From NCBI RefSeq assembly GCF_964204645.1, contig NC_134030.1, positions 10,437,947-10,501,946 of the forward strand: a stretch of DNA of 64,000 nt, in the 5' to 3' direction. Positions within the stretch are counted from its first letter, which is position 1, and each line of letters opens with the position of its first letter. The position numbers and the translations under genes were made by a program. Below are positions 6,155 through 42,425 of the stretch, piece after piece. This DNA comes from Tubulanus polymorphus (Eukaryota > Animalia > Nemertea). The notes under the pieces were generated by a model, which saw only the letters and a list, made by a program, of their open reading frames with translations, searched no databases and had not been told where the DNA came from.

Positions 6155-8798
6155 GTAAGCTGAAACTGTTACAGGGCGGTCACTTACCTGGATATCGGGG
6201 AAAGGTCGGGGAACTTTTTTTCTTTACAAAAGTGGGAGAATTTTGTAAAAGCCTGGCACGGACGTGTAACTTTTTCAAGCAATCAAGCGTGATGGTCAAA
6301 ATTGCTCGTTGTCGAACAAAAAATTGCTCGCCTGTAGAAACAGGAGACTGAAATAGCTTGTTGAATGGATTTGTTCCTGGCCGATATCAGCCCGATCGCC
6401 CAATACCAAATCTAGGTTTCTTTCATTGACTTGTCGGGGGATCTGAGGACTTCTCTCTAAGCTATGGCAACAATAAATCTATAAATGTGTTTATAAAAAT
6501 GTATCGAAATAGATTGGGGCCAGAAAAAAAGGCACTCAGAACATTTTAGGGGGGAGGGTGCAATAAGTGGTCAGAGCCGCTTGAATTTTCCAATTGCAGC
6601 ATGGCGCAACTGAAAATTGTCGGTCTGCTAGGGTTAGGGAGGGCATATAGATAGAGGTAACTGCAGGAAGGGTTGTTGACATTCGGCTGGCGGCGGGCAT
6701 TCAGCTGAATCCGGGGACGTGATTGAATTAAGCGATATTTATTGGCACGGACTAATCTTCGTATCTGTTAATACGAAATGTGTTACAATCGAATTTAACA
6801 ACCGTCCTTGTTCTATATCATCGCGTCATCTATATTTGTGTTAATGGCCAACTGTGCACATTCCATTGCCAGATACCGATTTCAGTTGCCTCTCTCCCTC
6901 CCCCCTCTCTCTCTGTCATTCTTGTTTGTGTGTCTGCGCTTCAAGTGGACGAATAAATCGATGAAACGAAACCAATAAAATCCACTCGGTTGACTTTTTA
7001 TCCGCCACGTGTGCCAATTATAATCGTTCAATTCCTATTGATAGCGGAACAATTTTTTTCCTTCGAGGGTCAAATACCGAAATTATATACGGACGTATGT
7101 GACTTATATGTACACGAGTGTGCGGATGTTTTCATTAACGAATGTTATTCGCATTTTTAGGATGCGCGCACTGTAAGAATCAGGGGCGCCGCACTTTGCG
7201 TTTTGTTTAACGATCAATTTTTTTCTATCGACTTTGAGTAAAAGTTGGCGGCTCATACTTAAGTCGAAGTTAAGGGTTTACGGAGACGTTCCATTAAAGG
7301 TATTAGAAATAGAAATTTTTGTCGGCCGCTCTTAACTTATGCAGTGGTCAATGACAATGCGGTATTCCTCCAGTCAGGAGCCAATCAGTGATCCGTGCCA
7401 ATTCGGCCCGGGCCTAATCATATTCTCTGTCTGATCGCGGCTTATGTTGTTAATCAATAAGCTGGGAATGAAAGCAGAGCTGCCAACTGTTCCTGATTTT
7501 CAGTATTTGTTACTATTTTGTAATGAGAAATGCTGATTTGATTTGTTTGATGCACATACAGAAATATGAAAGGTGTTACTGAGGGTATCACTGCTGATGA
7601 CCGATTAATTTGAACATTTCTTTCATATTTCGATGAAATATAACTGAAAAAATTCGATTTGTTACTGATAGCGCTTGATAGAGGATGGCGGCCCAGTGAA
7701 AGGGTTGATAGTGATAATAATTTATTCTCATTCAACTAATTTACAAAATAAGGGTATTTTCACGATTCGGAATAGGAGATGTTAAACGAGGTTTTGAACA
7801 CTGCTGCAACGTAGTAGGTGACTTAATAGGTCATAGAAAATAGTCTCAGTCGCTTACAAACACGCATACGGTTTTCCAGCGTAACAACAATGCCCAGTTG
7901 TAACGCCATTGATATTGCTGGTTGCATAAACATTTGATTTAGGTGAATGAAACCAATTTAGCGCGTGTATAAATTAGCTTTTGGAATGCGAGCGCGCGTT
8001 TAAGGCTGTATAATTCGTTAATCGGTGACTAGCAGCGGGAATCGACGAGCGGTCCGGTCTAATATATTATTAAGATAAAGTTTATCCGACGCGCTAGTTA
8101 TACTGATGAGGCATTCGATTGAATATTGTACGTCATTGAATACGTAACCTGTCTCAATTAACCAAGAATTTTGATTCAATTTCTTCGTTGTTTTAGATTT
8201 AGCCTACTGGGGCTTTTCTGTGAACGACGTCCATATTGTTGTCAACTTATGGCTTGTTTCAATTACTTGGAGTACGGATTTTTTCCAAGAAATAAATGGG
8301 AGGGCTATGGGAAAAATTGTTGTTAAAACTAAAAAGTTTTTTACAATCAGCGTTTCAATGAAAATCTGTTTATCATTGAGTATTTTTCACATAAAACCTC
8401 TGAAGGACTGCAGAAGAAAATAAAAAAAGAGTGAAAAGTGTCAATTTTACTACTTTTCGTCGACAAATGCAGAATAACTTTCTGGACTAGATCCAATCAC
8501 TACGCAAAGTAACCGATTTACTGCATTTGATATGTTTTCAGACATTAAACATCTTTAGGTTTGCCCTGCAATACATGTAATGCTGCTCATCATGGCAAAA
8601 GTAAATGCAATGTCTCTAATCTTCTATAGGCCTATATAATTTTGCCTCCCAGGAGAATTTTGGAAAAATGAACATAGACACAGACAGTTTTTCAATTGCC
8701 ATTCGAGGGGGTATCATATTGTTTGTAAATATATGAAATATTCAGAGTCCATCATATTGATTGTAAATATATGAAATGTTCAGAGTCTACTGTTCATG

Positions 8799-9008
8799 AG
8801 AGAAATCCCACAATAACGAAGCCTAGATTGAAAAATTGAAATTATATATGAGGAGCGACGTTTCGGCTAACAACTGTTAGCCATCATCAGGCATACTGAT
8901 CGCTCCTCAAATATAATCATTCTGATATAGAATTTTTCAATCTTGGCTTCGCTTTTGTGGGATTTCTCTCGTCATCATCATACACAGATATTGTGTATCT
9001 TCTCATCT
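8799..9008. mobile_element. Foldback retro-insertion containing a minimal hammerhead ribozyme, 15-bp TSD
   Basis: AGTCTACTGTTCATG is duplicated at 8784-8798 and 9009-9023. Inverted arms lie at about 8798-8858 and 8900-8970, with the hammerhead core in the loop. Confidence 0.8.
8853..8894 (-). ncRNA. Minimal type I hammerhead ribozyme motif (intact core)
   Basis: Minus strand GC-CUGAUGA-U-GGCUAACA-GU-UGUUAGCC-GAAA-CG-UC^GC: complete conserved core, up to 8 bp of stem II, palindromic ACGU in place of stem III. Stem I is only about 2 bp here. Confidence 0.75.
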
Positions 9009-9426
9009 AGTCTACTGTTCATGTTTTGCTACCTCCCGGTACAAGTTGACTGATGTACCTTTTTGTTTGTTTTATGTTTATTGCTAATGAAAATCTTGAA
9101 TTTCTACTGGACCCTAAGCTGATATGAATTGCACCCTCATAGAACATATAACAACGATAATCAGTTGCAAAATTCTAGCTCATGACAAGTTCTATGATTG
9201 CGGTGAGTTTCAAGCTAACTGATTGCACCGAGGGATGTTGAATATTGAAATGATCAGATTGACAGGCATTTCGCCAAGTTGGCATGGCGTCCCTGGACCC
9301 CTAGATTTTTGTGGTTTTGACCTTTTAATCATCAATCATCATCAATTTTAATCGACATACAGCGAATTCCAACTCTTCCGAGTTGCCGAGTCAACTTAGT
9401 CAACCGAGTCACCACCCTAAATGGCC

Positions 9427-28445: not shown

Positions 28446-28822
28446 ATCTCTGATTCTACATGTTCTAAGAACAAATTAGCAAGAAAATTCTCAACATTTT
28501 GTTAATTTAATGTTCATGAAGATGACTTTTAGGTTATAGTCGAAACGTCGAATCAATAATAACATCGGACTTCACCTTTCGTTTTATCAGTGTGGGATAC
28601 TCTACTTTATATACATTTATCTCTGATTCTACATGTTTTGAGAACAAATTAGCAAGAAATATCTCAACATTTTGTTAATTTAATATTCCTGAAGATGACT
28701 TTTAGGTTATAGTCGAAACGTCGAATGAATAAAAACATCAGCTATATAGGATATTTTTCGGACTTCCTTTCCGGACCTTTCGTTTTATCAGTGTGGGATA
28801 CTCTACTTAATATACTTTTTAT
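28446..28822 (+). mobile_element. Tandem dimer (173-bp period) of hammerhead-containing repeat, retrozyme-like
   Basis: The unit ATCTCTGATTCTACATG...GAAGATGACTTTTAGGTTATAGTCGAAACGTCGAAT...GTGTGGGATACTCTACTT starts at 28446 and again at 28619. Confidence 0.75.
28684..28727 (+). ncRNA. Minimal type I hammerhead ribozyme motif (intact core with stem I)
   Basis: UAUUC-CUGAAGA-U-GACU-(10 nt)-AGUC-GAAA-CG-UC^GAAUG. Stem I is UAUUC/GAAUG and cleavage is predicted after 28722. The upstream copy (28511-28554) has C3->A. Confidence 0.72.
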
Positions 28823-41412: not shown

Positions 41413-42425
41413 CTGGAGTATAGCGAAATATAGGTAAGAAATCCGACGATTATTTCAGCAAAAGACGGAATTCTCGAGTAGATAAGAATAGTGTATATTT
41501 GGAGCAACGTTTCGGCTATAAACTAATAGGGGCCGGTGCAGGAAACCCTGCTGGTGCTAACCGTGGTAAGTAAACTGTGGTTAGGCATAAATGGGTGCAG
41601 GAAATCGCTGATAGCTAACCAATGTTTTCGTGCGGCCTCTTATTTGAAGCTGCTTAGCCTAACCACGGAAAAGCCACTAACCACGGTTAGGCAAACAAGG
41701 TTTTCCAGCGCCATGTTATACTACTTCTAAATTATTGCGGTACTTTTAAGTATTCATATAAAACGGATATTGTCTATCTTATCGACCTTAAAAGTGAAAT
41801 CTACAATAAGTATTTTATGAAAACTATATAATATATTCCAAGTCAAACAGTCCTCAAATGAAAAGCGGCTTCACACGAGACACTGGGCTTACATAGTACC
41901 GTACGATTGTGTGGTGCCGACTATGCCCGAATACCGCGCATTGCGAGCAAGTTGCGTTCGCACGTATTTCAGCGCTTAGTAAGCCAGCTTTATTAGTTAC
42001 TAGCCAGAAACCCGTCTTCGATGGGTTGGTTGATATGGGGGAGACATAAACACATCAGTGTTACATGTCTATACCATTAACGTTAGTTCATGTTCCTTAA
42101 CAGAGGCACAATCTCCCAACTGCCAATTGTATGTAGTTCACTAATTTCCTCACAGAGATCGTCCACATGGCTGATGCGCGATGTTTTGATATCATTCAGT
42201 TATGATTTTCTTTTACTAAATTGATTGCGTCCTTGTGATCATTCACATTTAAACTATGCTACAAACCTTCCTAACGTTATTTAGGACAAAAAATCGCCAC
42301 ATCAACATTAAACAACCCGCTCAAAAACCGTGATGTGTCCTCCGAAAAACCTCCAACCAATTCATATCGTCATCAGATGCCGATATTGGAAGTGATTCCA
42401 AGATGGCCTTTCCACACTATCATCG

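Follow-up and report, generated by a model that had tools for sequence, protein, structure and literature searches.

Penelope-like elements (PLEs) of the EN+ kind, which combine a reverse transcriptase (RT) with a GIY-YIG domain, are the closest described systems to the locus analyzed here. Inverted pseudo-LTR pairs and 5′-truncated insertions are said to have been described for EN+ PLEs of the Penelope/Poseidon type by Evgen'ev and Arkhipova in 2005 and by Arkhipova in 2006. Also relevant are the metazoan non-LTR retrozymes, which are tandem hammerhead repeats that give rise to circular RNAs. To our knowledge, a PLE has been studied in vitro only once, in work on Poseidon of Anolis carolinensis (PAc).

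Published PLE insertions often comprise an inverted, 5′-truncated copy together with a tail of 30–40 bp at one end (PMC8557442). In Adineta vaga, PLEs show an inverted pseudo-LTR (pLTR), a 31-bp tail and a target-site duplication (TSD), and their pLTRs carry a TATA box and an initiator (Inr) (PMC3846280). The pLTRs of PLEs are also known to carry minimal hammerhead ribozymes, and dual hammerheads located on opposite strands have been interpreted as belonging to truncated elements of this type (PMC4209133, Cervera & de la Pena 2014). When such minimal hammerheads were assayed, single motifs gave no detectable cleavage and dimers had low activity (PMC4209133). In the anole PLE, the protein cuts each of the two target strands and extends it, with a preference for ATT and no requirement for hammerhead cleavage, and reverse transcription begins at two internal sites whose spacing equals the tail (PMC11167929). 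For nemerteans, our literature search returned no report of PLE hammerheads.

The locus lies in a stretch of 64 kb from the nemertean Tubulanus polymorphus, hereafter the window. A repeat search of the window places a 210-bp insert (8799–9008) between exact 15-bp direct repeats, and shows the insert to be an imperfect inverted repeat with one pair of segments of 58 nt matching at 81% (I1) and another of 18 nt at 94% (I2). Both the duplication bracketing 210 bp and the inverted arms had been part of the original prediction, and both are present in the form proposed. Each arm corresponds to a copy of a single unit, here called U and numbered on a reference locus (L021), and the parts of the insert are as follows.

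8784–8798, no strand assigned: left copy of the TSD, 15 bp, identical to 9009–9023.
8799–8899, minus strand: arm A, a copy of U running from U1 (8899) to U112 (8799), about 85–87% identical to the U reference by BLAST.
8857–8890, minus strand: minimal type I hammerhead core, with 0 matches in 100 shuffles.
8900–8971, plus strand: body of arm B, a 5′-truncated U extending from U42–44 to U113, 97% identical to the L032 reference.
8972–9008, plus strand: tail of about 37 nt (U114–151), present on arm B only, with a small stem-loop (ATACAC...GTGTAT) whose stem appears in the predicted fold.
9009–9023, no strand assigned: right copy of the TSD, beginning with an A that might just as well be assigned to the end of the tail.
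In U itself: hammerhead core at U10–43, predicted cut between U43 and U44, end of the body at U113, tail at U114–151.

In alignment with U, arm A has no tail, carries an internal deletion of about 10 nt and bears the hammerhead. The two arms meet with 0–2 nt of microhomology (TC), and arm B resumes at 8900–8902 (TC/GCUCCUC), with a 2-nt ambiguity, at the equivalent of the cut predicted in the other arm, where C17 is nucleotide 8857. The earlier observation that the second arm starts at the predicted cleavage site was therefore accurate to within 2 nt. The hammerhead sits in the loop of the foldback because arm A is full length and arm B happens to stop near U44; the loop is the excess of the longer arm, here U1–43 with the hammerhead core. 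The 210-nt insert is predicted to fold into a hairpin of −95 kcal/mol (z = −12). No Pfam match was obtained for the ORFs located up to 5 kb from the insert, and no PLE ORF lies within the window. The locus itself, a solo fragment that lacks a promoter and lies in non-coding DNA, matters little.

The insert has many relatives in the window's own 268-Mb assembly. A genome search gave 773 first-look candidates, 40 of which were scored to yield 91 matches with 73–89% identity to the window copy. A 39-nt pattern spanning the junction of tail and arm has at least 288 matches genome-wide and a 33-nt pattern for the arm end has at least 414, with no match for the reversed control of either, although the two patterns differ in stringency and 288/414 is for this reason not taken as a measurement of tail frequency. 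We read 86 distinct copies of about 290, selected with a pattern that requires a tail. When these copies are aligned, their outer ends are constant and their centers vary, and the hammerhead occurs on one strand, on the other, or, in the longest copies, on both. Constant ends around a variable center lead us to read each arm as a copy of one unit of about 150 nt, namely U, whose 3′ end faces outward and whose 5′ end is truncated in the middle of the insert at a varying point. Judged by these alignments, the insert is a member of a dispersed PLE-derived family in which each arm is a 5′-truncated copy of U.

Head-to-head pairs make up 61 of the 86 copies read. A tail of about 35–38 nt is present on exactly one arm in 61/61 pairs, a count made within a sample that demanded at least one tail, such that pairs with zero tails lie outside it and pairs with two tails were detectable; none of the latter was seen. 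The TSDs range from 6 to 17 bp with a median of 13 bp, and are 10 bp or longer in 51/61 pairs. Control boundaries shifted from the true ones have a flanking repeat of at least 10 bp in just 2/61, and this difference indicates that the duplications, including that of the window copy, are not due to chance. The untailed arms mostly end in ...CUCUC-GUCA, at about U116–117. At target positions −3, −2 and −1 beside the tail, the bases are A in 46/75, T in 63/75 and T in 58/75 copies, respectively, and a further A-rich target position is present 13–16 nt farther out, as expected from a second ATT-type nick on the opposite strand. As far as it can be read from the copies, this pair architecture of inverted, 5′-truncated copies with a one-sided tail and a TSD is the published insertion signature of PLEs.

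Several copies with a single arm continue upstream of U, and their upstream sequence matches another locus, L032, in which the C-terminus of a GIY-YIG domain is followed by a 3′ UTR and then by U. The GIY-YIG segment of L032 shares 79% amino acid identity with residues 661–796 of a 796-amino-acid ORF at locus L044, which contains matches to RVT_1 (E = 9e-12) and GIY-YIG (E = 1e-5). Units of 2857 bp are arranged in tandem at L044, L048 and L051. The non-coding end of the L044 unit matches U at about 75% identity across the end they share and carries a near-identical hammerhead, and its tail ends 4 nt before the ATG of the ORF. The genome contains many GIY-YIG matches, which often form inverted or tandem pairs. 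L032 is decayed and 5′-truncated, and L044, where an intact PLE is present, belongs to a related family; among the copies read, none was a full-length, intact master of the U family proper. On the basis of this domain architecture, a canonical EN+ PLE with RT and GIY-YIG has U as its 3′ end, and in tandem copies it is, by its position, also the leader (pseudo-LTR) of the predicted mRNA of the next unit. A partner element encoding RT and GIY-YIG is thus present in the genome, and the assignment of the insert to Penelope-type retro-insertion is borne out by the end it shares with such an element.

We propose that the insert is a dead-on-arrival, extremely 5′-truncated EN+ PLE insertion made from leader RNA, in which twin cDNAs were joined, and we assign this reading a probability of roughly 0.85. 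As a pseudo-LTR, U would provide a TATA box, a TCAGTA initiator, a hammerhead 8 nt downstream, two start sites for reverse transcription and the start codon of the ORF. The two internal start sites are placed at about U116 and U151. The PLE protein would nick both target strands about 13–15 bp apart at AT-rich, ATT-like sites, with the stagger between nicks giving rise to the TSD, and each nick would prime reverse transcription of the leader RNA from an internal start site. Priming on two strands is taken from the in vitro work on the lizard PLE and would apply here by analogy.

According to this scheme, the tailed cDNA would begin at U151 and the untailed cDNA near U112–117. One of them would run off the 5′ end of an uncleaved leader RNA at the transcription start while the other would halt early, and the growing cDNA ends would then be joined in the middle of the insert with little or no microhomology to create a head-to-head pair. 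The unpaired center would be whatever the longer arm has in excess. The data fit a pair of target-primed cDNAs of the leader RNA, each begun at a different start site, that were joined where they were growing.

The centers of the pairs also bear on another route, wherein a single cDNA folds back and copies itself by self-priming to generate the inverted pair. Such snap-back synthesis has been discussed for palindromic PLE junctions in Adineta vaga (PMC3846280), and some pairs in our sample have the near-perfect central palindromes that it would produce, for example L060 (U53/U53) and several with U1–3/U1–3. However, most pairs are strongly asymmetric at the center, including the window copy, where U1 abuts U42–44, and simple snap-back gives no asymmetry. 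The strict rule that one outer end has a tail and the other has none is likewise not readily explained by the simple form of this process, and we consider it unlikely to have produced the insert.

The twin-cDNA reading has each pair forming anew at its own target, and shared inner junctions are not predicted by independent formation at each insertion. Nevertheless, inner junctions and filler bases are common to unrelated loci in at least three groups of copies (L009/L011, L002/L005/L006 and L007/L023), wherein each copy has its own TSD and flank identity is at random level. These shared junctions and fillers suggest that a foldback, once formed, can be copied again as a unit. It is a doubtful but conceivable proposition that some leader-only foldbacks are not simply dead by-products but are re-transcribed and re-inserted in this manner, which would make them a non-autonomous, foldback-shaped retroelement with its origin in a Penelope pseudo-LTR. 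If a foldback were transcribed, its stable hairpin RNA could feed small-RNA silencing of the parent's leader.

The same process could be invoked for the window copy, which would then be a pre-formed foldback contained in a read-through transcript and reverse-transcribed as one unit. The groups with identical junctions and different TSDs are the evidence in its favor. However, none of the other pairs among the 61 read has the junction of the window copy (U42–44 abutting U1), most junctions are likewise unique, and the foldback has no TATA box. Some of the shared junctions, moreover, fall on microhomology (TGATGA) and could recur independently. For this copy we regard secondary mobilization as quite unlikely, and joining of two cDNAs made at the target remains the preferred reading.

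The hammerhead motif on the minus strand of arm A runs from CUGAUGA and an unpaired U through a helix II of 7 bp, closed by a loop of 4 nt, to GAAA, a helix III of A-(CG)-U and C17; the stretch after helix II reads GAAAC-GUC. The cut is predicted between 8857 and 8856, and the 5′ strand of helix I (GC) is at 8892–8891. All nucleotides of the conserved core are present (C3 U4 G5 A6 N7 G8 A9, G12 A13 A14, A15.1-U16.1 and H17), and the core is invariant in a motif alignment of four PLE families of this genome and two window copies. Among the six sequences, compensatory changes occur in three of the seven pairs of helix II, and 93% of cells are paired compared to 15–49% when the partners are slid. 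Helix I formed in cis has only 2 bp, G1.1-C2.1 and C1.2-G2.2, rather than the 4–6 bp sought, although the 2.2-1.2 pair covaries and 6 bp are present in helix I of L043, a sister family. The fold predicted for the 210-nt insert places the cut site, with U16.1 and C17, inside the long foldback helix, where it is buried.

The Rfam hammerhead models gave no match at the gathering score at the locus and none at E ≤ 10 on positions 8700–9100, which fits a helix III cut down to a single A-U pair. Weak matches to Rfam miRNA and snoRNA models, including a plant miRNA hairpin, were dismissed as shape-driven. From its core and predicted pairing, the motif is a minimal hammerhead of the PLE type, as originally proposed, with covariation in helix II and the architecture reported in PMC4209133. 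This hammerhead can be called intact with regard to its core, helix II and minimal helix III, but not with regard to the 2-bp helix I or to recognition by Rfam. Any ribozyme activity of the motif is putative. The window copy carries a single hammerhead, so a dimer cannot form in cis.

Whether cleavage shapes the insertions can be judged from the points at which arms begin, and for this purpose 151 arms were mapped against the U reference extended upstream. Starts at U−1 to +6 account for 61 of the 151, another 15 arms start farther upstream, and the other 75 are scattered over U7–U91. The peak at U1–4 is within TCAGTA, 31 nt downstream of TATAAATA (a TATA box at −31), and 41 nt upstream of the predicted cut. 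Both the TATA and TCAGTA motifs are conserved in the sister family. Given this layout of TATA box and initiator, we interpret the U1–4 peak as cDNAs that ran off the 5′ end of the mRNA, with a transcription start at U1–4 predicted from the motifs and the cDNA ends. A CAG just upstream of the hammerhead was also considered as a 3′ splice site that might cause the peak, by comparison with Penelope of D. virilis, and was rejected because the arms stop there without a shared upstream exon and because of the TATA box at −31.

The original prediction had taken the insert to be a separate, non-autonomous RNA that is processed by its own hammerhead and mobilized in trans by a Penelope RT, with the start of the arm perhaps marking the cleaved 5′ end. 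The short arm of the window copy indeed begins at U42–44, adjoining the GUC that precedes the cut, and arms at two other loci (L008 and L012) also begin no more than 2 nt from the site; the complete set of core nucleotides and the covariation of helix II are also consistent with a role for the ribozyme. However, starts at U41–47, which are within 3 nt of the cut, number 8, where a uniform distribution would give 5.7 (binomial p = 0.21). At U44 itself 3 arms start, and several other positions have 3–5. Starts at the cut are thus not enriched across the family, and the match in the window copy is best regarded as a coincidence.

Moreover, forty per cent of arms keep 41–43 nt that cleavage would remove. 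Since most full-length arms retain this segment, the uncleaved RNA appears to be the template, and the arms argue in general for templates that look uncleaved. The proposal of a distinct RNA also fails to fit the origin of the arms, which are 5′-truncated copies of the PLE's own leader/3′ end, leaving no separate element to be processed. A helix I of 2 bp in cis counts further against processing, as do the published findings that single minimal hammerheads of PLEs lack detectable cleavage in vitro (PMC4209133) and that the substrate of the anole PLE is unprocessed RNA, with no reads ending at the cut (PMC11167929). We therefore judge it very unlikely that ribozyme processing set the start of arm B, and the inference of a ribozyme-processed RNA is not supported. 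A foldback DNA transposon or MITE with a chance hammerhead-like string might have accounted for the long inverted arms and the very stable hairpin, but is effectively refuted by TSDs of 6–17 bp rather than fixed length, asymmetric ends with a one-sided tail, inner truncation points that vary, and arms homologous to the 3′ end of an element encoding RT and GIY-YIG.

The family can thus be viewed as a natural, in-genome record of PLE insertion, and this record agrees with the in vitro study (PMC11167929). Its features are element 3′ ends at both ends of the insert, a one-sided tail, an ATT-like target and cDNAs that extend to the predicted transcription start rather than to the hammerhead cut. 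The last of these argues that hammerhead cleavage does not set the template that is reverse-transcribed, and bears on the role of hammerheads in PLEs.

Comparison with metazoan non-LTR retrozymes reveals a type I hammerhead, TSDs and presumed mobilization by PLEs in common. Unlike retrozymes, the insert has inverted arms and one hammerhead and lacks a direct tandem repeat, and nothing suggests a circular RNA. The resemblance to the hammerheads of PLEs, in particular the Drosophila virilis variant, is closer and includes the type I architecture, a long helix II (here 7 bp) preceded on its 5′ side by an unpaired base, and location in a pLTR. In addition, both have a 2-bp helix I and a helix III with an A-U pair and a palindromic CG, which could extend to ACGU in a dimer. 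The sequence of the present motif differs in being specific to this genome, and the window copy has a single motif.

PAc shares with the present family the spacing of start sites for reverse transcription by the length of the tail, an ATT-like target and an apparent independence from hammerhead cleavage (PMC11167929). Extension of both target strands by the PAc protein would also fit inverted pairs whose 3′ ends face out. However, the PAc hammerhead overlaps the start of the ORF, whereas the present one belongs to the leader and precedes the ATG by about 105 nt. Start-site use by PAc in vitro showed no difference between the strands, whereas every pair read here joins one tailed and one untailed arm, which suggests a stricter rule than the in vitro work on PLEs implies.

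Insertions of EN+ PLEs are alike in having head-to-head, 5′-truncated copies, a tail of 30–40 bp at one end and short TSDs of variable length. They are alike also in a pLTR with TATA box and Inr, a parent ORF with RT and C-terminal GIY-YIG, and tandem full-length units. TSDs in A. vaga are 8–10 bp and those found here are longer, with a median of 13 bp. The family also differs in consisting of the pLTR or leader alone, in about 150–320 bp with no ORF and in at least 288 copies. The element is of the Penelope type, and insertions of this kind are already known.

Several foldback copies, each consisting of two inverted arms of the ∼150-nt unit U (the 3′ end and leader of a Penelope-like element, PLE), share the point at which their arms meet. 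Inner junctions and the filler bases within them are identical among the members of three groups of loci (L009 and L011; L002, L005 and L006; L007 and L023), and within each group the loci are unrelated, with differing target-site duplications (TSDs) and flanking sequences whose identity is at the level expected at random. The recurrence of identical junctions and fillers at unrelated loci suggests that whole foldbacks may have been re-mobilised.

Apparently intact PLEs are present at L044 (G000:C5:7310000-7319999), L043 and L051, where ORFs of 796-833 aa carry both reverse transcriptase (RT) and GIY-YIG domains. These elements form arrays of ∼2857-bp units, in both tandem and inverted orientation, in which the ATG of one unit lies ∼150 nt after the predicted promoter (TATA plus Inr) and hammerhead of the unit preceding it.

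No PLE ORF is present in the window, which holds these additional features:

28446-28822, tandem ∼173-bp repeat carrying a hammerhead motif that has a CUGAAGA core and a 6-bp helix II and belongs to the sister PLE family
41479-41524, weak 48-nt U-like fragment
46352, minus strand, CUGAAGA-type hammerhead core

The second unit of the ∼173-bp repeat has an intact core at 28689, and the first reads AUGAAGA, with C3 altered. The window therefore contains at least three PLE-derived hammerhead remnants.

Directly upstream of the 210-bp foldback insertion, a 38-bp unit occurs as two tandem copies of 94% identity (8713-8787), and the last four nucleotides of the second copy are also the first four of the TSD.

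A tandem array follows a U copy at L063 (G000:C4:26582833-26583872, about 795-1034). Its 26-bp unit runs from around U5 as far as the loop of helix II, corresponding to the 5′ portion of the hammerhead, and the array looks as though RT, on reaching the RNA 5′ end, had jumped back repeatedly.
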